A model generated the notes under the pieces. The model was not told the DNA's origin, made no database searches, and saw only the letters and a list, made by a program, of their open reading frames with translations. From the NCBI GenBank assembly GCA_964252035.1, contig OZ176200.1: DNA of 64,000 nucleotides; one strand, given 5' to 3'. A program made the translations under genes and the position numbers. Shown one piece after another: positions 6,027-57,571 of the stretch (positions within the stretch are counted from its first letter, which is position 1; every line of letters starts with the position of its first letter). Source of the DNA: Podarcis erhardii (taxonomy: Eukaryota).

Positions 6027-6150
6027 TAGTCTGAAGTGGTCCTGTCTATTCTGCCTCTAGACTCCACCACCTCATTTGTCCATATATCTAGACCCAACCT
6101 TAACATATTTCAGGCAAGATGAATGATAGATCATTCATACAATAATTTTG

Positions 6151-7258
6151 TTTTTTTTTTTTTAAAATAATTTTTATTGATTTTACAACATAAACAAAAA
6201 ACAAATAAACATAACACGACTTCCCCAAACCTCCCCTTCACTGCATCCATATTTTAAATTTTTTAGCAATTCTTCATCCCATTTTTATATTTAATTCTCT
6301 TAAAAAAAAAAATTCTATTTTATAAATTTCAATTTATAGCTGTAATTCTTTGTATCCAATCCCTTGACATCTTAACATTCCGAAATTTTACAACAATTTT
6401 TAAGATAGATTTTAAATTTTTTCCAGTCCTCCTCCACTGTCTCTTTCCTCTGGTCACGGATTCTGCCGGTCATCTCTGCCAGTCCCATAAATTCAGTCAC
6501 CTTGGTCTGCCATTCTTCCAGAGTAGGTAATTCTTTAGTCTTCCAATACTTCGCCAAAAGGATTCTTGCTGCTGTTGTTGCATACATAAAAAAGGTCCTA
6601 TCTTTCTTTGGTACCAATTGGCCGACCATGCCCAGGAGAAAAGCCTCCGGTTTCTTTACAAATGTCCACTTAAGGATTTTCTTAATTTCATTATAGATCA
6701 TTTCCCAGTAGGCCTTAATCTTTGGGCAGGTCCACCAAAGGTGATAAAAAGTTCCTTCACATTCATTACACTTCCAACAATTGTTATTGGGCAAATGATA
6801 TATCTTTGCAAGCTTGACTGGGGTCATGTACCACCTATAGATCATTTTCATTATGTTCTCTTTCAGGGCACTGCATGCCGTAAATTTAATACCTGTGGTC
6901 CATAACTGCTCCCAGTCAGCAAACATAATATCATGACCAATATCCTGTGCCCACTTAATCATGGCTGATTTAACCGTTTCATCCTGTGTATTCCATTTTA
7001 GCAGCAGATTATACATTCTAGACAAATTCTTAGTATTGGGTTCTAGCAATTCTGTTTCTAACTTTGACCTCTCCTTCTGAAATCCTAGTTTTCTGTCCTG
7101 CTTAAAAGTTTCATTGATCTGGAAATAATGTAACCAATCTCGGACTTTAGGTTTCAATTTCTCAAAACTCTGTAGTTTCAACTTTTCACCATCATATTCT
7201 ATAATTTCACAATATTTTGGCCAATCTGTATCCATGTTCAGTCTTTTTACCGCCTTGG
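6151..7258 (-). mobile_element. 5'-truncated LINE-1 (ORF2 C-terminus, 3'UTR and poly(A))
   Basis: 19-bp TSD cattcatacaataattttg (6132-6150 and 7259-7277), poly(T) at 6151 and a minus-strand AATAAA. The protein aligns with the C-terminus of the full-length L1 ORF2 (CWKC..GTFYHLWWTC zinc knuckle). Confidence 0.95.
6372..7258 (-). pseudogene. L1 ORF2 C-terminal fragment (uninterrupted, ~295 codons)
   Basis: ORF track 6372..7364. Homology to L1 ORF2 begins at ...AKAVKRLNM; the first ~35 residues come from the TSD and flanking DNA. Confidence 0.9.
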
Positions 7259-38006: not shown

Positions 38007-39649
38007 GTAAAAGCATTTCTTCTCTCAACTGTTGTCTCTGCTTCTGGTTCCTTTTGTCCTTCCACATTTGCTTTTCTTCATTCGTAAGGTCCACAACACA
38101 TCCCAAAGTACTCTCGTCTTTCTCTACCCCTTTGCCTTTCTTCATTATTGCCCCTGATGGTCTTGTGGTTGGAACAGAATAGGAGGAACAGCACATGGAG
38201 CAGATTCAAACATTCAGGCTGCAATGCTGTGCCCACTTAGCTGAGAGTATGCCCCGTATTCCATGGGACAGGAATACTTTTGATACAAGGACCCACATGC
38301 TTGAAATCATATCTGCATAGGTGATTCATAAGCTTTAGACATCCTGCATGTTTGGGAGACAGGCCCAGTTGTTAGTTTTTGAGGTGGATAGATACACTGG
38401 GATGCAAAGAGTTGGGTTGTTGTTTCTGTCTGCATCAGGTCTTTTCTGTTCCCCTTCTTTTGGCAGCCACTTGCACTCTACAAAAAGCTAGTTATCAGGA
38501 CACTCCATGCAGCAGCATACAATGTGAGTGGATTCAGCCGGGGAAAATTAGTAAACAATCAAACTCACACTCATAATGCACTGTGGAATTACTGTCCATG
38601 AGTATATGGGCCTGTTTGTCCTTAGAACTAGATCCATGTTAATTTAATCATAACTTGATTTAACTCCCATTGAAATCAGTGGGAGCGAATTTCAACTTAA
38701 GTCACTCTGGAACTAACCCTATAATTCTGACGTTTAAAATAGAAGTAAGATAAATAAGTTTTGTATGATACTGGCAATATTATTAATTTATTTTAGAGGC
38801 ACAGGAATGCACCTTTGAAATACCAATAATAAAAAATTGGGGCATGCAAACATCTTTTAATTAATGTACATATTTATCTGGGAAATAGAAAGTCTAGAGG
38901 AGTGAAAACAGGCCATATGCAGCCTCCAGCCAGATTTTATCCAACACTTCAGGTACCTTCCCAACTATCAGCAGGGAGGGAAAAGGACTTTGATGTTGTG
39001 CAAGGTTGTGCAATTTCAACTCTTTCCTCTGTGAGAAGATCAAATCAGGGAGCAAAATGTCTCATCGGAATTCTGCTTCTTACAAATATAGTATGCATGC
39101 AATTTAAGGCTGCAAAGTTTGAGGCTATAAAGTAAGACTGTGCAATGATCTTACTTTAATTCTTCTGCTGGGTTTACTGAGCTCTTTTTGCCTTTTGCAC
39201 AGTCAGGACAGGCAAATGATATTGCAGAGTTGTTGTTTTTTGCTGCAAACGTTGCGGGGTGGGGGGAAGTATGAGGAAAATGGAAGGTGAAAAGTTGAGT
39301 GGGGTTACTAAGAAATATATTGCCTGTTTTCATGGGAAATAGCTTTGTGAGCTTGCCTATATATTACTGGAAGGTGATCCATGACAGCTTTCCACTGGGT
39401 GAATATTTACCAATCCTGGGTTAAAGCAATGGGTGATGTTGCAGAAATTATATTAAACTGAGGCATAATATCTTATAGTAATGGCATGTTTTTCTAGGGG
39501 TTAAAGTTAGTGCTATAGAAAAGCTTAATAGGTGTTATGTGCTAGGGAGAGTCTTACCCCACCAATAGTCTGACTGAAGCATTTTGCACCAGCTGGAGCC
39601 CCCAGACCAGGCCCAAGGGTAGTCCCATGTACTGCACATTGCAGTAATC

Positions 39650-41515
39650 TTTTTATTTTATTTTATTTTTTTTAAAATAATTTTTATTGGGTTTTTACAT
39701 TTTATAACAACAAACACACACACAAAGACAAGAACACACAAACACACAAATACAATTACATACCCTAATTTTCTTTACCCACTTTCATTGACTTCCCCCC
39801 ACCCCCTCCTCTTACATCCCAGTTCCAAAATTAATTCAGCAAGTTCTTACCTAACCTCTTAAAGATATTCATATTGTTTTTAAAAATTAAATTCTTTTTG
39901 TTTATCTATATTCAACTTATCCAATTCTCTTATAATCATTAATTTCTTTTTTTTAAGGTCGATCTAACTTCCCCTCCACAAATTTTCCCTTTATTATATT
40001 AATTATAGGTCACATTGACCAAGTAAAACAAAACAAAACATTTTATAGTTCTATTCTCTCCCCCCCCCCGCCCCGGTTTCTGTCCCTTCCCAGACAAATG
40101 TCTAAAAAAAACAAACAAAAAATAGTTCTTAGCCCGGATTCCTCACGTCCGAGGCGTCTGATTCTCTGTCAGTCCCTCTCTGCCAACTATGTTGGTAGTT
40201 CTCTTTGTTGGTCCTAAGACCCCGAAGGAGTTCAGTCAGAGTCACATCATATTTTCTTTCATCCAGAATGTTAAAGAGTATTTGCTGCGAAAGACCATCT
40301 AGTTTTCCATACTCAAGAGGAAAGTCCCAATCATGTTGCTTTATTCTTTTTAGTTTTAATATTCCAAGTACTCCAGGGACTTCTCTCTTCTTCTTTCTCA
40401 TCTTTCGCAGGTTTGTAATCCAAAGGTCTTCTTGCTCATACTCTAACAATGCAGATTCCTGGTTGATATTTTCCACTTGTAGTGTCTGAACTCCTTCTTT
40501 CTTCTCTGTCAATTCCAAAGGCATCTCTTCCTGCTCAGCTGCAGAGTTTTTATCATGCGTCTCCTTTGTGCATTCAGCAGAGTTGTTTGTTTCAGAATTC
40601 AAGGTCATAAAAACTTTACTCAAAGCCATACTCTGCTCCTGCAGGATTCCCACGAGAAAGAACATTTTTTCTATCTCCGCCAGTAATTTTCCCTCTGCAG
40701 CCATTATAATGTCACTAATTCCCCCTAGGGGGCTTTCAGTTATTTAGTAGTCCTTTTCCAATAATCTGTTACTTTGTTATTATCAATACTTTGTTTCCAA
40801 TCGCCTCAGTCCAAATGTATCAACTTTAATTCCAAGAGTTGTTAAATAACAAAATTCTTTACTTTGTCCGCCCGTTTGACAGCTTCTTTGACAGCTGTCA
40901 AACTCCTTTCACTTCTTCCTCCGGCACCCAAATAGGACACTCCCGGGTTTTTGGGGGGGATTACACACAAAGTTCCAAAATTCCCTTTCTCTCCAGCACA
41001 AAATCTTCTTCTATCAAATTTGTGAAAAACTTTTAAATCATCAAAACAGTATTCATTCCGCCTTAATTCTCCGTTCCTTGCTTTAAATCGTCTATAAGTA
41101 GAGGGGGTGCGGACTTCCCTTTAACACATCCCCCGATCGTGCCGAATTCACAGGATAAAATTTTTAAAGTCCAAATTCCACTACTCACGGGTCCTTTGTT
41201 ATCCAGTCCAAATTTTGGGAAGAAAGTCAGCGCTCTCCGGCCATGGCTTGCGGCTTCACTCCACTGAGATAGCGGTCTACTCTCAGCACCACGCCACTCT
41301 CCGTACCCTCTCCGCAGCCTTTAAAAAGGCTCTTCGTGGGTCGGGGAGGGCGCTTAAGGTGCCCACCGAGTCACCAAGTCCGCAGGCTTCCGCGCCTGCG
41401 GTTTCTGAGGGTCCCCGTGTCGCCGGCACGGCAAGACCCGTCCTCAGTAGAGCCGATTCCCTCCGGAGCTCGGAGGGAATCCGCCATTAGCCGTTCGCGC
41501 TAACCCGGAAGTCTC
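39650..41515 (-). mobile_element. 1.87-kb non-autonomous L1-related retroelement carrying one orphan ORF
   Basis: 18-bp TSD ctgcacattgcagtaatc (39632-39649, 41516-41533). CpG-rich 5' end homologous to the full-length L1 5'UTR; L1-like 3'UTR with AATAAA and an (AAAAT)n/A tail. No ORF1 or ORF2 motifs. Confidence 0.88.
40129..40704 (-). CDS. Hypothetical 191-aa protein of the non-autonomous element
   Basis: Uninterrupted ATG-to-TAA ORF with strong Kozak context (ataATGG) and an A-rich sense strand. No recognisable domain. Confidence 0.6.
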   Translation of the reverse strand: MAAEGKLLAEIEKMFFLVGILQEQSMALSKVFMTLNSETNNSAECTKETHDKNSAAEQEEMPLELTEKKEGVQTLQVENINQESALLEYEQEDLWITNLRKMRKKKREVPGVLGILKLKRIKQHDWDFPLEYGKLDGLSQQILFNILDERKYDVTLTELLRGLRTNKENYQHSWQRGTDRESDASDVRNPG

Positions 41516-41760
41516 CTGCACATTGCAGTAATCAAGTCTAGAGGTTACCAATGCCTGAATCTTCTGTGGCCAGACCATCCTTGTCCAATAATGGTCATAG
41601 AAAATGTAACAGCCATAACTGGTAAAAGGTTTTCCTTTCAAATGGGGCTACCTGACCCTCCAGCAACCAATTTGGATCCAGGAACAAGTTAACAATTCCT
41701 AATATGCTATACAAGCAATAAGTTATCTCCTCTTTGGTAGCCAACACACAAAATTCTGGG

Positions 41761-47827: not shown

Positions 47828-50800
47828 TAAGCTGCATTATTATGAATGATTTATCACAGTAGGAAGCCTTGTTGGAGAAGGAGGAAAAGATTCTATTCCT
47901 GGATTTCGGTTGCCAACATTTAGTCCTGGCGTTCTGTGCCTTTAGGATCTGCATGGTAATTTGAAATTCAACAGGCAAAGCTTTTCTCAGACCTAGAGTG
48001 CTAATTTTTTGTGTAGGTTTGCCTATGGGGTGAGATATGGTGAATAAGAAGAGCAGAGTTTCTGCACCACCAATGTGGCATTGGCTAAGAGATTTGCCCG
48101 CATCATTTAGCAAAGTGCTTTCTTGTTTCTTTTTGTTTCTATCCTTCTTACTTTATGCAGATTTATTTGACATCAGCACACTGATTCAGTTAATTAATCA
48201 GTTAAAACAACTGAATCAACTAATGTAATTGGAGCAATGCAGTAAGGGACTATTCCATTGGAAAGAAATATGAAGCAGAAATGGACAGAAAAATGCAGAA
48301 GAACTGGAGGGTGCCACTTGATACCATCTTTTCCAGGATTCTTTTTCTGGAGATTTTTACCTTTAGCAAAATCTAGCTTAGTTCATCTTCACTGCAATGA
48401 GGGTAGAATTCTAGACACTGACTTGTGCTTATAGATGGTATTTTTTTACTTGAGTTGAAGAATTTTTGCGCACACTAATTTCGCATGCAATGTTTTGTGG
48501 CGTTTCCCAGTTTGCAATGAATATGGCTTCTTCCCTCACTCTTTTTTACTGCTGGAGTGTGTTGTTCTTCCAGACCACACCGTTAAGAGTTTGGGTTATG
48601 CCCTGAATAAAAAACACTTTTGTATCCAGTGCCAAATTCAACCAAATACTGGATGGATAAAAGGCAGTATCATCAGATGCAAATATTTCCCCAACAGGAG
48701 ACTGCTTGAAAATAAACTTTATAGTGGGAAAGTATTTTGGTCTGTGTTTTCTTTGGTGCGCTCAAATTCTTGACTTCAGAATGGCTTTATAGGACAATCT
48801 GGCTTGGAATTTCTTTCCGTGGAAAAGGTTACTGCTACTTTTACTTCTTATTTTGATTCTGACTAAGTGTGTGGAAGGGATTCTTTTTATCAAGATGGAA
48901 ACCACACACTGCAGTTTTTTAAGCGCCCAGGCTCCTGTACAAGGGGATCAGCAATTGTAGCAGTGGGTTCCAGAGGCTAATTCTTGGTTGCTACAGTTGC
49001 TGGTTCTTTCCTAGGTGGTCTCCTATGACTTTAGTGGCTGCATGAGAAGCTGAAACCCAGCAGGTAGAGCTCTTCCCACCACTGTATCTGCACACTGAGG
49101 AAAAACTTCATCTGTGCTGAATTTTTGCTAATCATGCAACTGTTTAAAAGCAGAAAGGCTCTCTTGGATAATAAAAAGTAGTCGGTGCTTGCAGAGGGGA
49201 GGAAGCATGTAACAAATTAGCCAATTTACCTTTCAGTTAATCTTACATGTCTTATCTATCTTGGCTTGCATATTTCTGTGTGTGGTCAGAGATCAAAGAC
49301 ACGTAGCTGGAGTTCAAACAGCTGTAAACCTTGGAAGTTTTTCATGTGATTAGGAGGGTGCAGTCACAACTGGAATCTCATTCATTTTCTTGTAGTATAG
49401 AATTGCAAGAGCGTGCAGATATTTATCTGTTTATATAAGAAGCATTCATGCAATAAACCATGGTTGTATCACCTTGGCAGTACAGTTCACTATTGACAGT
49501 TTACCTTTAATTAGTTGATTACGCAAGTCCAAGTTAAATGACCTTTGAAGTTTGTTTCTCCCAGTTGAATAGGATCTTACCAGATCTTGGTCAGGTTTCC
49601 CAGGAAAGGGGACTAGTTTTGGGCAATGGGGATGCCATGACTGACTGTTGAGGGCAAAGTGTTCTTGCTGCCAAGTTACAGGTGGGTGGTGGGCAGACAG
49701 ACAGAGGTGCGTGGAGTGGGAGCTGCATTAGGATTGGCTGGTTGAGCAGTTGAGTGGAGAGCAGTTCCTAGAAAGGGAAGCAAATGGCTGTGTTTTGTGT
49801 CAGCTCTGACAAATGCATTGTAACCAGCAAGGCGTTGAAATTTTACTTAGTGCCAAGCTCATTGTTCATCATGTGCCCTCTCTGGACATGTGGGAAAATA
49901 TAAATGTAGAAAACAGATAACTTTACTTTGAGTCAGGAAAGGGTGGGATTCCTTTGCAGCTCCTTAAATATCTCAGTAAAGTTTCTGGATGGCAGCTCCT
50001 ATTATAGTTAGCCCTTGGACACTAAGGGCATGAAGCTTTCCTTCAGTTTGCTCTGTATTGGTTTCCTTTTGCGTTGTGAGTGTGCCAGGGCCAAACCTTT
50101 GCCAAATGGTCTCTGTAGCACGGAACTGGAGCAGCGAAGACCACCCAAGGCAGGCAGCCTTCTTACTAAGAATACCCTCAACGTCATCCCCGGGCTTCCA
50201 CTGTAACAGGCAGACTATTCCTAGCTGCTGGATGGAACATAATGAGGCTTTATTTAACTTCAATACATAGTATATTTATACACTTTGTGGCTGTTCTATA
50301 ACCTCTCCAATTGTGTCCTCCAGCAGCACGCAGTAGTACATTGATGCAGATCCCACTTGCGTCAAACATCAGCTCTGCTGAAGTTTATTTTCTCTTTAGC
50401 CTGATAAATGCAGATAGGTGCAAAAATATGCATAACCCTCAGTTTTGTTGACCACAATTGTGTGGATTAGGACATTGCCTATACACAACTGCATATATTT
50501 TTGGTAATATATTCTGATAACAAAAGTAGAAGCTTTGTTGCATTTGCAAATGTATGGCAGGGAATTAGATGACTGATGGAGACGGGAAGAAAAACCACAC
50601 ATTGTATCTGGTTTCTTTCTAATATTTTTTTTTTTTAATAATATTTATTAAAGTTTTTTAAACAATAAACAAAAAACATACATAATAACATAGTCTTTTC
50701 AAATTTCCACATTTCATTCTCCTCTTTGGACTTCCTCACATCTCTTATTCCTGCATTCTGAACTCACAAATTTTGCTAGCAAATTATTTACTTGTTTCCA

Positions 50801-50974
50801 TTCATATAATTATCCAATATTAAATCTCAAATTTTAGAATTTAAATCACACTTTTGAGATCTTAGTTTAAAATATTGTTTATCCAAAATTTGTCTTTTCT
50901 TTCAATTACATTCAAATTTATATTCCTTATTACTAATTTGTTGGAGCCGTGTTATTACAAATCTTACATCTTTC

Positions 50975-53900
50975 TTAGCATTCATACAATTTACAATGTT
51001 TTTGTAGATAATCCTTAAATTTCTTCCAGTCCTCCTCCACCAGTTCCTCTCCCAGGTCTCGGATTCTGCCAGTCATCTCAGCCAGTTCCATATAATCCAT
51101 CAGTTGCATCTGCCATTCTTCCAGCGTGGGCAAATCTTGAGTTTTCCAGCATTTAGCAATGAGTATCCTTGCTGCTGTTGTGGCATACATAAAAAAAGTT
51201 CGATCCTTCTTTTGCACACTCTGGCCGACAATGCCTAAAAGAAAGGCCTCTGGTTTCTTAGGGAAGGTATACTTAAATACCTTTTTCAGCTCATTGTATA
51301 TCATTTCCCAGAAAGCCTTCACTCTAGGGCAAGTCCACCAGAGGTGAAAGAATGTTCCTTCAGCTTCTTTACACTTCCAACATTTATTGTCAGACAGATG
51401 GTATATCTTTGCGAGCTTGACTGGAGTCATGTACCACCTATATATCATTTTCATAATGTTTTCTTTCAAGGCGTTACATGCCGTGAACTTCATACCGGTG
51501 GTCCATAACTTTTCCCAGTCAGCAAACATAATGTCCTATGTCCTGTGCCCATTTTATCATAGCTGATTTAACCGTTTCATCCTGTGTATTCCATTTTAGC
51601 AGCAAGTTATACATTATCAAAAGTGTCTTAGAGCTGGGTTCTAACAATTCTGTTTCTAACTTTGATTTTTCCACCTGGAATCCTAATTTTTTATCTGACT
51701 TAAAAGCTTCTTTAATCTGAGCATAATGTAGCCACTCTCGCACTTTCCCCTTTAGTTTCTCCATACTCTGCAACCTCCAATTGTCTCCATCTTTTTCTAT
51801 TATTTCCCAATATTTCGGCCATTTGGCCTCCATATTGAGTCTTTTCGGGGCCTTAGCCTCCATTGGTGATAACCACCTTGGGGTCTTGTTTTCCAATAAG
51901 TCCTTGTATTTTGACCAGACATTGAACACTGCTTTTCTGACAACATGATTCTTAAAAGCCTTGTGTATTTTAACCTTGTCATACCACAGATATGCATGCC
52001 AACCAAAAGCATTGTTAAATCCTTCCAAATCTAAAACATCAGTGTTTTCAAGAAGCAGCCAATCTTTCAACCAGCAGAAAGCTGCTGATTCATAGTAAAG
52101 CTTTAAGTCTGGCAGGGCAAAGCCCCCTCTTTCTTTAGCATCAGTTAGTATCTTAAACTTAATTCTGGGCTTTTTGCCCTGCCAGACAAATTTTGAGATA
52201 TCTCTTTGCCACCTCCCAAAACACTCCATTTTATCCACAATCTGCAAGGTTTGAAACAAAAACAACATTTTTGGCAATACATTCATCTTAATAGCAGCAA
52301 TGCGTCCTGACAAGGAAAGTTTCAGTCTTGACCAAACATCTAGATCCCTTTTAATTTCAGACCAACATTTTTCATAATTATCTTTAAATAAATTCATGTT
52401 CTTCGCTGTTATGTTTACCCCTAGGTATTTTACTTTTTAAACCACATTTAATTCTGTCTCTTTCTGAAACCTTTCTGATTCTGAAGAGGTCATATTCTTT
52501 TCCAAAACCTTGGTTTTTTGCTTGTTAAGTTTAAATCCCGCCACCCGACCAAACTCATAAATCAATTGCAGTACCCTTTTGGTGCTGGGCTCTGGCTCCT
52601 GTAAGGTCAGTACTAGGTCATCTGCAAATGCTTTAAGTTTATATTGTTTCACTCTGACCTGAATACCCTCCACCAACCGGTCTCCTCTGATCATATTTAA
52701 GAGCACTTCCAGGACCGATATAAATAACAAAGGGGAGATAGGACAACCTTGTCGTGTTCCTTTTTCAATATTAAACTCTTCCGTCACCACATTGTTCACT
52801 ATCAGTTTTGCCTTCTGCTCCGAGTAAATTGCCTCTATCCCATTCTCAAACCCCCGCCCCACTCCCATTCCTTCCAAGTTTTTCTTCATAAACTTCCAAG
52901 AAATATTATCAAAGGCTTTCTCCGCATCTATAAATATCAAAACTGCTTTTGTGTTGATATTTGTCTGCAAGAGTTCCAAGATATCAAAAATGTTTCTTGT
53001 GTTTGCAAACAAATGTCTACCTGGGAGAAAGCCTGCTTGGTCCTTATGGATCACTTCATTTAAGACTTTTTTAAATCTGCTTGCTAAAATGTCTGCAAAT
53101 ATTTTGTAATCCACATTCAGGAGGGAGATGGGGCGGTAATTCTTGAGTTGTGTCTTTTCGGTTTCTAGTTTAGGTATCAATGTGATGAAGGCCTCTTTCC
53201 ACAACTCTGGTGCCTTCTTCCCTTCCATAATTTCATTTCAAACCTCCATTAGTGGGTGCATCAAATAGTCTTTCAATATCTTATAATACTTGGAGGTGAG
53301 ACCATCTGGTCCTGGAGATTTGCCCAATTGCATGTTCTGAATGGCTTCTTCAATCTCTTGTTGTGTTATTTTGTAATTCAGGATAGTTCTATTTCGCAGA
53401 GACAACCTTGGTAGACCATTCTTCTTTAAAAATTGTTCTATCTCCGATTCATCTTGCGGCCCTTGTGTATATAATTGCTTGAAGTATCTCTGGAAGCACT
53501 TTCTAATTTCCACTGGGTTCTGAATATTTCTTCCTTCAATTTCTAAATTTGTTACCGTGTTCAATTTTTGTCTCTTTTTCAGCTGCCATGCTAGCAGCTT
53601 TCCACATTTATTTGCTGATTCAAAGGATCTCTGTTTCATTAGCTTGATTTTCCATTCCACTTCCTGATTTATCAGTTTGGAATATTGCGCTTGATAAAGT
53701 TTAATTTCTCTTAGAATCTCCTTTGATTTCGGTTTAGATCTTAATTTCTTCTCACCTTCTTTAATTTTCTCCAAAATCTTATCTTTTTTCTCATTCTGTG
53801 CTTTTTTCCTTATAGTGTCCTGTTGTATCAGAAACCCCCTCATAACCGCCTTGCTTGCATCCCAGACAGTTCTTTTTTCCACCGTAGTGTTCAGGTTAAT

Positions 53901-54711
53901 CTCAAAATAGTCCTTCAAAGCTTTTTGGGCCTTTTTAATAATCTCCTGATCTCTAAACAAGTTGTCATTCATCCTCCATCTGAAGGAGCCGGTTGGAGTT
54001 AGTGTCATATCCATCTTTACAGTGCTATGGTCGGAGCAGGTCTTTGGGCAGATTTCCACTTTTTTTTATCTTAGGTGCCAGGCCTCTAGTTGTCCAAATT
54101 TGGTCGATTCTTGTCCATGTCAATTGGGCTTCAGAAAAAAAAGTTCCCTCTCTTCCTAGGGGGTTCTTTGTTCTCCAAATATCGATCAAGTCCATGTTGT
54201 CAGTAAGTTCAAAGAATGTTTTAGGTAGTCTGCCTTCTTTTGTTACGTTTTGGCTGTGTGACTTATCCTTGTTAGTTGATACCACGCCGTTCCTATCTCC
54301 CATCATAATGATGTTGTCGTAGTTCAGATAGTCCAGTATTGTCTCATGCAGCTTCTTGTAGAATTCCGATTTTCCGTCATTTGGCGCATAAACTCCTAAT
54401 ATCAAAAACTTTTCTCCTTGGTTCTGAATCTCAATTGCCAGGATTCTTCCTAGTTCATCTTTGAATAGAAATTTTGGTGACAGGCTCTCTTTTGCATATA
54501 TCACCACACCTCTTTTCTTGACTCGGTCTGAAGAAATAAATTCTTGGCCTAATCTTTTATTTATTAGCACTTTTCTATGAAGCCTAGTCACATGTGTTTC
54601 TTGTAAACAAATAATGTCCAATTGTTCTTTTTTCAAAATGTGAAATATCCTTCTCCTTTTTTCCGGGATGTTGGCGCCGTTTATGTTCCAACTCAAAAGT
54701 TGCAGAGACAT
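50975..54711 (-). pseudogene. L1 ORF2 (APE endonuclease, reverse transcriptase, CCHC), disrupted
   Basis: SWNING, LQETH, YAPN, PGPDG, YRPISLLNVDYKI, DAEKAFD, GTRQGCPISP, FADD, YLG, CWKC..HLWWTC. Lesions: +1 A (~54060), TGA (53238-53240), TAA (52437-52439), and an apparent 5-nt deletion (~51535). Confidence 0.96.
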
Positions 54712-54725
54712 CCTGAATAAATCTG

Positions 54726-55743
54726 TTATTGCTCTGGTGGTGGTATCTTTTTGTCCTGGTCTTCAGGCCCCAAAGGTGTAGGTATAGATGCAGAGGATGG
54801 TCCAGCCCCTGAGGGTTCTCCAATCCCTTTCTGAAGGTCCTCTCCGTAAATATTCAAGAATTTGTCTCTGTCTTCAGCTGTTTTTATTTTCACCTTCTTC
54901 CCTCTAAACGTAAACGATAGTCCTTGTGGAAATTCCCACCTAAAAATAATTGAGTTGCTCCTCAGCAACCTTGTTAGTTCAAGGTAGGTGGATCTAAGGT
55001 CCAGAAGTTGTCTAGGAATATCCTTGTAAATCTCTGCTCTTTTGTCCAAAATTTCAAGTGACTTTCCATAGTGTAGTCCTAATATCATATCTCTTTCCTC
55101 CTTGGATCTCAAAGTAATCAAACAGTCTCTGGGCTTGTCCTTCCTTGTCAATTTCCCAAGTCTAAAGGCCGTCACAATTTTAAAGTCCTCTTCTTCCTTC
55201 AAAGGCCACCACTTAGAAAATTCCTTTGTCAAAAAGTCAGTTAAATTTCCTTGTTCAGGTTCAAGTTCTGGCACGCACCTCAATCTTAGGTTGTTTTCCC
55301 GGGCCCGAAGTTCGATCATAGACAAGTAGGTCTGCTGTTCCCCGACCTGCTTGTGGAGTGGTCTTACCTCCTGCTCCAGTGCCTCAGTTTTCTGAATAGC
55401 TTCCTCTGCCAATTTCCGGTTTTCTGCAGTGGATTCAGTTAATTTGCCAATTGCTTGTGCATTTGATGCAACTTGCTCGGTTAATTTGTTGACAGAATCT
55501 CTGGTCTGATCAATCTTAGCCGTTTGTTCATCCACTTTTTTTATCTAGGCCTTCCAATTTTTCAACTATTTTGTCTAATACTGAAGCAGATCCCCCTGAT
55601 GCCATTTCTTCTACCGGCAGCTGTTCAGCTCCCTCTAATTCGAAAACATTGGGGGCAGATGATCTTCGTGGCTGCGAAACTAAGGTCAAGGTTGCTTGCT
55701 TTTTTCCTCTAGCCGCTCTTGTTTGTCTCGCAGTGCCACTCAT
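54726..55743 (-). pseudogene. L1 ORF1 (coiled coil, RRM, CTD), one frameshift
   Basis: ORFs 55743-55528 and 55535-54726 are joined by a +1 A in a homopolymer at ~55540. RENNLRLRCVPE RRM motif and IYKDIP...FRWEFP CTD are present. Confidence 0.92.
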
Positions 55744-57571
55744 TCCAATTTTATCTGCAAGTCAAGGTCAAATTGAGTATATTCCCATGGGAATCCACAA
55801 GCCCATAAAGTAAACTTTTAGGAGGAAAAGAAACCAAAAGGAAAGTCAAGTGTAGTTGTAAATCCAAAGTCCTCTAGAGGGAGCCCACCTTTAAAATCGG
55901 GGATAAATCAAATTTATAAATCTCCTTGTTTAAATCTTTAAAGTTTTCCCCAGTTTTTGCACAGTCCAAACAGCCTTTAGTTTCCCAAAAGACCTTCAGT
56001 TTAGTTGTATTTAGCAGAGTTGGTCTCAAAAGTAACAGTGTCTCAGTAAGTGCAAAATGTAACAGTTCAGTATAACAGTTCCACTAAAGCTCAGTTAATA
56101 ATACCTTCAGCAACAAAATATCAAAGTCTTGCAATCTGACAGCTCTATTGTCCAGGCAGTCCAACTACCAGGGATTCTTTATCAATTTGTAAATCCAACG
56201 GAACAGGTATCAAACAGTTTGTATTCCAAAATAAACTTTTAGCAAGTTAAGTCCTAAAGCAGCTTAAATGGATGTAGGATGTGAGAATTGCTTGCCTTTT
56301 AACGCCTCTTCAAAGGCTCCAAGCTTCAAAGTCTTTGCTTTATATCTTTAAGCAGTGGCAAGAGACGGACTTCCTGGTTTCGTCTCTCGTTTTTAGCCAA
56401 ATTAACAAAAATTTAGCATCCCAATCTTTCTTTCCTTCTTACTCACGAGTTGTTGATTTCCAGCCGAATGGTTCCAGGAAAAGAGGACAGCGCTCACCGA
56501 TAGCAGCTTCGCGGCTTCACTCCACAGAAAGAGCGATTGACTCACAGCACCGCACCCCCTTCCACGTTCCGAGACCTCTTACGAGGTCCCTTCTACGTTT
56601 CGGGGAGCGCTCCTGGTGCCCGCCGAGTCCCACGGCCACAGGCTTACGCTGCCTGTGGTTTTCCGATGTGGGTCTCCGCTGCGCCGTAGCGGACGACCCG
56701 TTTCTGTGGAGCTCCCTCCTCGCAGTTAGAGAAGGGCAGCCATTGCCGGACGCGCCGCCTCCGGAAGTCCTGTTTCTTTCTAATATTTAATGCTTCCATA
56801 TGGCTGACTTTTTTTTTAAATAAACTGGTTGACTTGTAAAGCGCATTGATGATGAGCAAAAATTTCCCAGTGTTGATTCATTACCAATTAAAGCAACAAA
56901 TTAAACAGTACTACTTTGCATGAGAAGGATGTATATAGAACAAGATTTTATAATAAAATATATTTTATGAGAAATGCTGAGGATTTTGTTAAATGGAAAG
57001 GAATACATGAAGCATTTTAGTAGAGCAACAAATCAACCAGGTAGTTGTTCTTGATGTGTAGTCAATCTATCAAAGGTTTATGGGGCCCTTAGTAAAACCT
57101 TGTAAAATGCTGGCTTTATGGTGACTGTCTGCTCTGCCTCCCAGTCATTTGCTGGCGTCTGAAGCCTGGCAGCCTTATTTATGAGCAATTCTACATTTCA
57201 GCCCTAGTAAATTAGGCAACGTCTAGCATCAACACCCCTGGCCTGTATGCCGAGGACTGCATCTTGGAGACTAAAAAATACTGGGAGTCAGTGGAGGTGT
57301 GCTTGTCTTTCACCAGTGATTTGCAGCCACATTGGGTTACTGAGGACAAGGATTATTATAGCTCCCCCCTTCCCCCATCAAGCAGCTTTGCTGAAAACAT
57401 GAAAGATTTAGAAGAAAATCACAGATTGACCTTTTATCTGGAAATACATTTTTCCTGACTTTAATTCATTTGAGATACAAAAATATTGACCCAGAAGCTG
57501 TTTCATTAGTATTAGTATACAGTGCACCAGGTTTTTGTATGCTGAAAGGAGTTCACGTGGGAGAGTGACTA

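Follow-up and report, generated by a model that had tools for sequence, protein, structure and literature searches.

A candidate family of non-autonomous L1-derived retroposons with a putative miniature ORF1 protein in lacertid-type lizards

A stretch of 64,000 nucleotides from contig OZ176200.1 of Podarcis erhardii (assembly GCA_964252035.1), referred to here as the window, contains on its minus strand a retroposon of less than 2 kb which begins and ends like a LINE-1 (L1) element and encodes one small protein in between. The question raised by this locus is whether such a unit is a damaged L1, a copied or captured host sequence, or a member of a family of its own that lives on the machinery of L1. 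The evidence points to the last of these. The element is best read as a full-length member of a non-autonomous, L1-derived family of about 1.8-1.9 kb in lacertid-type lizards, a reading to which a probability of roughly 0.7 can be given, and its open reading frame (ORF) is probably a strongly reduced version of the L1 ORF1 protein (ORF1p).

Anatomy and insertion of the element

The retroposon unit extends over window positions 39650-41515, minus strand (1,866 bp), and is flanked by two copies of the target-site duplication (TSD) CTGCACATTGCAGTAATC, at 39632-39649 and 41516-41533, identical at 18/18 positions. It closes with an A-rich tail at 39650-39673, reading A5 T A4 T A4 T A8 in the sense orientation, and an AATAAA signal lies upstream of this tail at 39683-39688, with a short spacer between them. 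The parts of the unit, with the evidence for each, are as follows (5' and 3' untranslated regions are abbreviated as UTR).

39632 to 39649, no strand: TSD copy on the 3' side of the element in sense orientation (18/18 match to 41516-41533)
41516 to 41533, no strand: TSD copy on the 5' side (identical to 39632-39649)
39650 to 41515, minus: complete non-autonomous L1-derived retroposon, 1,866 bp (TSD, tail and L1 ends; collinear with the contigs L001-L012 at 66-78% nucleotide identity)
41046 to 41515, minus: L1-type 5'UTR and probable internal promoter, beginning with GAGACTTCCGG (aligns with the L1 5'UTR from the first bases; composition)
40705 to 41045, minus: family-specific section of the 5' leader (no match to the L1 of the window)
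40129 to 40704, minus: ORF of 191 amino acids, 22 kDa, isoelectric point (pI) 5.2 (ORF list, relatives and profiles)
40132 to 40155, minus: codons of ASDVRNPG, with the stop codon directly after them (conservation of the C-terminal octapeptide)
39650 to 40128, minus: 3'UTR with conserved blocks, TG-rich stretch, AATAAA and A-rich tail (alignment of relatives)
39655 to 39724, minus: L1-type 3' terminus (75-81% identity to two L1 3' ends)

When the element and one TSD copy are deleted, the flanking old repeat, which from its motif we take to be an L2-type fragment, can be translated through the junction without a break (...LVTSRLDYCNVQ/YMGLPLGL...). Since the empty site restores the frame, the insertion is a clean one of the target-primed reverse-transcription type. 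In addition, the perfect TSD, the intact ORF and the CpG-rich 5' end together point to a young, recently inserted copy. Only one sense-strand ORF of at least 50 amino acids is present within the element (40129-40704, minus, 191 amino acids, intact), and neither an endonuclease nor a reverse transcriptase nor an ORF2 was found in it, either in the ORF list or by nucleotide and protein comparison with the ORF2 of the L1 in the window. In fact, the unit with its 18-bp TSD and A-rich tail, the frame restored by its removal, the single intact ORF and the absence of ORF2 motifs had all been described in an earlier note on this DNA, and all of them were reproduced here.

L1-type ends and relatives of the element

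The window holds one L1 with which both ends of the element can be compared.

50623 to 56771, minus: full-length but degenerate L1, homologous to the element at both ends (5' and 3' alignments; context only)

This L1 has a 5'UTR of about 1 kb; its ORF1 is frameshifted close to the MASGG region, and its ORF2 is broken up into five or more ORFs. Because of these lesions in both frames the copy is dead, and it stands for the type of autonomous partner, not for the actual source of the ORF2 protein (ORF2p). At the 5' end, element positions 52-288 align with its 5'UTR at 56719-56488 with 68.6% identity over 245 nucleotides (E = 5e-12). Moreover, in a global alignment both begin with the same nine nucleotides, GACTTCCGG, and the two sequences remain alignable for about 450 nucleotides, in which they are about 68% alike and have the blocks GTGGAGTGAAGCCGC, CGTGAGTA and GGAAGTCCG in common. 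At the opposite end, the last 70 or so nucleotides of the element, among them AATAAAAATTATTTT(A)n, match this L1 at its 3' end (50623-50682) with 75% identity, and a 5'-truncated L1, likewise at its 3' end (6145-6211), with 81% identity (E = 1.7e-12). Both the L1-like 5' end and the L1-type 3'UTR motif of the earlier note were thus borne out, the former from the same first nucleotide and the latter over about 65-70 nucleotides. Between the ends, the interior of the element has no nucleotide similarity to the L1 of the window. A scan of the element against Rfam gave nothing at E = 1 or better except one chance match to a long non-coding RNA, and the identity of a short interspersed element (tRNA, 7SL or 5S head, RNA polymerase III promoter) was ruled out, no small-RNA-derived head appearing in that scan. 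The 5'-truncated L1 (6145-7265, minus) belongs to another subfamily, with 77% identity to the 3' part of ORF2 in the L1 at 50623-56771, and its 3' terminus is the closest match within the window to that of the element (81%).

Relatives were found at both the protein and the nucleotide level. With the ORF of the element as query, 7 homologous proteins of 188-214 amino acids were retrieved at 38-50% identity, while a profile search carried out exhaustively on 1.84 billion representative proteins yielded 10 family members, all of 129-215 amino acids, and neither longer fusion proteins nor a related host protein family; a further profile search of proteins added one fragment, P0041. Among the matches is a Podarcis lilfordi protein annotated as hypothetical (CAI5779343.1). 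As regards the DNA, 12 Logan contigs (L001-L012, from twelve or more sequencing runs) are collinear with element positions 27-1860 at 66-78% nucleotide identity, a collinearity that is not confined to the ORF and takes in both leader and 3'UTR. Divergent subfamilies have a common layout, consisting of a leader of about 810 nucleotides, an ORF of 171-215 amino acids and a 3'UTR of about 480 nucleotides; the ORF starts at nucleotide 811 in a distant subfamily (L010) and at 812 in the window element, and protein identity between deeply diverged subfamilies is 26-50%. Furthermore, a complete copy of about 1.8 kb, 75% identical to the window element, lies on the P. lilfordi chromosome to which this hypothetical protein belongs (L009:4927-6722). 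It runs from ACTTCCGG to an A-tail, its ORF is frameshifted, and the 14-bp duplication that flanks it, TAACT[G/A]TTTCTATC, is its own and unlike that of the window copy. In related species, 22-42% of the 31-mers of the window insertion are present. The family is real, with a kept architecture, independent insertions and a selected ORF.

Selection was assessed across the ORFs of the relatives, a check that had been proposed in the earlier note. Pairwise ratios of nonsynonymous to synonymous substitution rates (dN/dS) ranged from 0.24 to 0.48 in 35 informative comparisons of 9 coding sequences, and the corresponding ratio of proportions (pN/pS) was 0.47 for residues 1-30, 0.69 for residues 31-160 and 0.42 for residues 161-191. 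These values show an ORF under purifying selection, in which the N-terminal helix and the C-terminal peptide are the most conserved parts.

Descent of the open reading frame

The protein has an N-terminal helix (residues 2-42) and a middle of low complexity which is acidic; residues 99-120 form a basic patch, residues 115-181 a CTD-like remnant (CTD being the C-terminal domain of ORF1p), and a conserved octapeptide closes the C-terminus. The helix, whose hydrophobic residues have a heptad-like spacing, is the only part predicted confidently by AlphaFold, with a predicted local distance difference test score (pLDDT) of 72-86; the mean pLDDT of the AlphaFold2 models was 46-48 overall in runs with 8 and 15 sequences. 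In order to compare this protein with ORF1p, a profile of the family (A4) was aligned with a profile of 14 genuine lacertid L1 ORF1 proteins (A5), the latter reaching the mouse and human ORF1p structures 2ldy and 2ykp and being, therefore, a genuine L1 ORF1p profile. Residues 115-181 were placed by hhalign onto the CTD of ORF1p with a probability of 73.7%, E = 2.9e-5 and a score of 42.1, in an alignment which contains a 17-residue deletion. Column shuffles scored 14.2 +/- 2.5 (maximum 21.9, n = 150) and reversed profiles 13, the true score lying about 11 standard deviations above the shuffles. A second, collinear block is formed by the first 62 residues, which alone scored 22.3 against 12.2 +/- 2.3 for the shuffles (maximum 19.2), and Met1-Ala-Ala-Glu-Gly aligns with the conserved internal MA(S/A)GG at which the coiled coil of ORF1p starts. 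In a greedy profile alignment both proteins are collinear from end to end, the region of the RNA-recognition motif (RRM) being nearly all gaps; no segment of the family could be aligned confidently with the RRM of ORF1p, and the element protein is about 150 amino acids shorter than the local ORF1p.

Compared with the coiled coil-RRM-CTD order of L1 ORF1p (2ykp, 2ldy), the heptad-like N-terminal helix aligns to the start of the coiled coil and the C-terminal segment to the CTD, whereas the lizard protein is without the RRM and the N-terminal extension, has a pI of about 5 instead of being basic and shows no confident AlphaFold fold past the first helix. On the basis of these profile alignments, the ORF is probably a miniaturised ORF1p, in which the coiled coil survives in its first part and the CTD as a remnant, the RRM and the N-terminal extension having been lost. 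The single non-L1 ORF of the earlier note is then probably a misnomer, given the profile matches at the CTD and at the coiled-coil start. That note had also described the ORF as lacking both the RRM and the CTD of ORF1, which holds for the RRM, for which no counterpart was found, and is not supported for the CTD, a CTD-like remnant being detected by profile-profile comparison. Its label of HAL1-like fits, in turn, better than was assumed at the time, the ORF being most likely a much reduced ORF1. A different source for the C-terminal half, either the C-terminus of ORF2 or the chimeric ORF of a deleted L1, was considered and excluded, since no similarity was found.

Several points weigh against this interpretation of the element and its ORF. 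The ORF1 homology is seen in profile-profile comparison only, with an hhalign probability of 74%, an identity of 17-21% and a shallow family profile (effective number of sequences about 3). With HMMER, the majority of the family members align in collinear order to the ORF1 profile, never significantly and with bit scores of 10 or less. Being acidic (pI about 5) and without a recognisable RRM, the protein is unlike the basic, RNA-binding ORF1p, and for this reason an ORF1p-like chaperone role cannot be assumed. Besides, only about 25 family proteins were found in a collection of 15 billion, the target site (sense ACTT/GATT) fits the classic TT/AAAA only loosely, and the case for mobilisation in trans draws on the ends, the TSD and the tail.

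The most serious alternative, which we regard as unlikely, accepts a non-autonomous retroposon mobilised by L1 and takes its ORF to be unrelated to L1, either a captured host sequence or one that arose de novo between L1-derived ends. An acidic protein without an RRM, an HMMER comparison with ORF1p that is not significant and an hhalign probability of just 74% are what this explanation would lead one to expect, as are the blanks in the databases: neither the ORF nor any of 15 family members had a credible Pfam match (there were isolated chance matches at E 0.03 or weaker, each in one member and to another family), a sequence search of the PDB with the family profile gave nothing credible, and the best matches in the ESM Atlas were RNA-virus nucleoproteins and coat proteins with scores of 0.80-0.82, below the meaningful level. 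Nevertheless, the Pfam blank is uninformative, because genuine lacertid ORF1p (A5) is missed by Pfam as well, no L1 domain being reported for it. The distance between the hhalign score and its shuffled and reversed controls, the N-terminal block that beats every shuffle, the alignment of Met1 to MA(S/A)GG and of the C-terminal D[V]xN..G to the conserved tail motif of ORF1p, and the lack of any related host protein family in the exhaustive profile search all speak for descent from ORF1p instead.

Far less probable is an origin from a rapidly evolving host gene (such as one domesticated from ORF1, in the manner of L1TD1), of which L1 would passively have made processed pseudogenes or retrogenes that do not constitute a self-propagating family. 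The mRNA-like build (a leader and a single ORF, followed by AATAAA and poly(A)), the purifying selection on the ORF and the few family members in protein databases would suit this explanation. Against it, the window copy and the L009 copy start at the same L1-type first nucleotides, so that each includes in full the CpG-island 5'UTR, which is homologous to the internal promoter of L1. The element also has an L1-type 3' terminus, subfamilies at 26-50% protein identity keep both the architecture and the L1-type 5'UTR, and neither an intron-containing parent gene nor a longer protein was found in the profile search of 1.84 billion proteins. Finally, a single L1 that underwent an internal deletion during or after insertion has next to no probability, for all its L1-like ends and the internally deleted L1s that exist nearby in P. 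lilfordi (L009:1347-3485), since elements with this layout of 1.8-1.9 kb, 66-78% identical, are present at further loci and in further species, the ORF resembles neither the chimeric ORF1-N/ORF2-C product nor the C-terminus of ORF2, and the interior has no nucleotide match to the L1 of the window. The statement of the earlier note that the element is not a simply truncated L1 stands, with collinear relatives in 12 contigs and in P. lilfordi, and the case which it had named as refuting, a single copy explained by post-insertion deletion, was looked at and is excluded by the cross-species family.

The miniaturised ORF1p which is preferred here ends in a peptide that deserves separate treatment. 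Of the 15 family proteins aligned, all but the frameshifted P0012 terminate in ASD[V/L]R[N/S/D]PG-stop; the closer members end in ASDVRNPG, always with the stop directly after it. Among 11 coding sequences, the codons for Ser, Asp, Arg and Pro vary synonymously, Val is replaced by Leu once, and the Asn codon shows synonymous variation in most copies and encodes Ser in three. Since the codons vary synonymously with few replacements, conservation acts on the peptide and not on the RNA. In the greedy alignment the octapeptide lies opposite the conserved D(I/V)ANLSFG motif of the ORF1p tail, and it may simply derive from ORF1p.

Two known peptide signals resemble it. The first is StopGo/2A, with the core motif (D/G/C/N)(V/I)ExNPGP; ribosomes stall at termination in reticulocyte lysate when a 2A peptide has a stop codon in place of the proline after NPG (PMC12846837). 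The lizard protein ends ...DVRNPG, although its register falls one residue short (DVRNPG versus DVExNPG), the residues corresponding to positions 12-14 do not fit and position 14 lacks its Glu; moreover, a stop replaces Pro19, and the Asn becomes Ser or Asp in distant family members. On this definition of the motif, StopGo/2A identity was rejected. The second is the class of Gly-end C-degrons read by CRL2-KLHDC10, with the C-terminal consensus Trp/Ala/Pro-Gly (PMC11568203). All 14 intact lizard proteins end in Pro-Gly, as the sequence of a Gly-end C-degron of the KLHDC10 class does, a resemblance in sequence only; the lizard conservation spans eight residues, whereas the degron is defined by two. 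By analogy with these signals, it is a decidedly doubtful idea that the octapeptide is functionally central to the parasite and acts on the ribosome as a 2A-like stop peptide which slows or blocks release and tethers the nascent mini-ORF1p to its own RNA, or serves as a Pro-Gly C-degron, or both. If it did, stalled release would be a built-in device for cis-preference or ribosome docking, helping an RNA without reverse transcriptase to capture L1 ORF2p, and the C-degron would clear any mini-ORF1p not assembled on RNA.

Proposed mobilisation, known systems and conserved non-coding parts

From its ends, TSD and tail we infer that the element is mobilised in trans by L1 ORF2p. In the proposed cycle, RNA polymerase II would transcribe the element from its internal L1-type CpG-island promoter, the expected start being GAGACTTCC, and the transcript would be polyadenylated at the element's own signal. 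A small acidic protein would then be translated, probably oligomerising through its N-terminal helix, and could mark or package its own RNA, possibly co-assembling with full-size L1 ORF1p. In a last step, the ORF2p of an active L1 would be captured in trans via the poly(A) tail and perform target-primed reverse transcription, leaving duplications of 14-18 bp.

The closest known system is HAL1, described as a 'non-autonomous derivative of L1' which encodes only ORF1p and has had several origins in mammals (PMC5753468, in which Smit 1999 and Bao and Jurka 2010 are cited as the sources). The lizard family resembles HAL1 in that the L1 ends are kept, a single ORF1-type frame is present without ORF2, families with TSDs and A-tails are formed, and mobilisation by L1 in trans is presumed. 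It differs in its host, a squamate instead of a mammal, in an ORF of 171-215 amino acids, about half the local ORF1p (about 340-370), in an acidic protein without a recognisable RRM, whose kinship with ORF1 is visible only by profile-profile comparison, and in its conserved C-terminal peptide. To our knowledge, HAL1-type elements have so far been described from mammals only, with a complete ORF1. No squamate family of this type was described in the full-text literature searched; Repbase and Dfam lay outside this search, and the family may be catalogued there. Relative to HAL1, the new features are the host clade, the drastic reduction of an ORF1 still under selection, and the terminal peptide. 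SVA, LAVA and Alu can also be compared, since they too have poly(A) tails and TSDs and depend, as is presumed for the lizard element, on ORF2p supplied by L1 in trans; nevertheless, those are non-coding composites or small-RNA-derived elements, whereas the lizard element combines an L1 promoter with a selected ORF and has no Rfam match.

HAL1-type elements indicate that a parasite of L1 can gain by keeping ORF1. The lizard family retains a remnant of about 190 amino acids only, in which a helix predicted to oligomerise, what may be a fragment of the CTD and the conserved peptide at the C-terminus are still under purifying selection across deeply diverged subfamilies. It could therefore serve as a natural deletion experiment, addressing how little of ORF1p can still be useful for retrotransposition and by which route a parasite RNA reaches ORF2p. 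In addition, the annotation of squamate genomes is affected, since these elements bring CpG-island promoters and intact ORFs into genes, and at least one is annotated as a hypothetical protein, the P. lilfordi CAI5779343.1 mentioned above.

The non-coding parts of the element are also conserved. Its first 400 nucleotides form a CpG island, with a GC content of 0.64 and a ratio of observed to expected CpG of 1.03 in the first 200, and of 0.51 and 0.94, respectively, in those that follow, and from this 5'UTR we infer an internal promoter. The L1-type first 470 nucleotides or so keep 74-78% identity even where the proteins of the subfamilies share just 26-31%. Three conserved features of the leader can be located.

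41452 to 41484, minus: conserved 5' palindrome or hairpin GATTCCCTCCG-AGCT-CGGAGGGAATC, element positions 32-64 (self-inverted match)
40887 to 40902, minus: invariant leader palindrome TTTGACAGCTGTCAAA (TTTGACAGCTGT unchanged in 8/8 aligned elements)
40721 to 40732, minus: palindrome CCCCCTAGGGGG shortly upstream of the ATG (conserved; reads IPLG in subfamilies with an N-terminal extension)

The hairpin is a consensus of 3 family members and 2 L1-type 5'UTRs, with three pairs changed on both sides, a covariation in five sequences only which constitutes weak evidence. Its counterparts lie at 56700-56740 of the window (minus, in the L1) and at L009:1375-1410. The leader palindrome is the sole exact occurrence of TGACAGCTGTCA in the window. 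In the 3'UTR, conserved blocks are found past the stop (GGGAC..AACCGGG) and at GGGGGAAGTCAATGAAAG. Roles of these blocks in promoter activity or RNA packaging are guesses. A scan for bacterial-type promoters and terminators was also made on the element, and is irrelevant to a eukaryotic one.

Minor observations concern the same regions. At 39706-39753 the 3'UTR contains a CA-rich (TG-rich in the sense orientation), microsatellite-like stretch, at whose place a CT-rich run is found in L002, and this is thus a variable low-complexity spot of the family. A splice-donor-like CCGTGAGTA at about 41164-41172 (minus; element about 345-353) is conserved in the subfamilies and in the L1 5'UTR (about 56440-56450), and could be a U1 small nuclear ribonucleoprotein site or a true donor. 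Likewise, an upstream ATG in the context AATGGC, at about 41486-41488 (minus; element about 28), is kept in the element, L009, L010 and two L1-type 5'UTRs; the ORFs which start from it have 37, 68 and 5 codons, and the peptide itself is thus not conserved.

Two further observations lie outside the family. On the P. lilfordi chromosome OX395132.1, at L009:1347-3485, lies an internally deleted L1 of about 2.1 kb with an L1-type 5'UTR and a chimeric ORF of 268 amino acids, in which the ORF1 N-terminus and coiled coil are joined directly to the ORF2 C-terminus; it is a second, different kind of L1 derivative without reverse transcriptase. Finally, two Podarcis muralis proteins annotated as TRIM39-like (P0037 and P0038) combine RING, B-box and related TRIM-type Pfam domains with a match to L1 ORF1p (51% identity, 88% of the query covered). 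Either the gene models are chimeric, or a TRIM-ORF1 fusion gene exists, which would be a candidate restriction factor.

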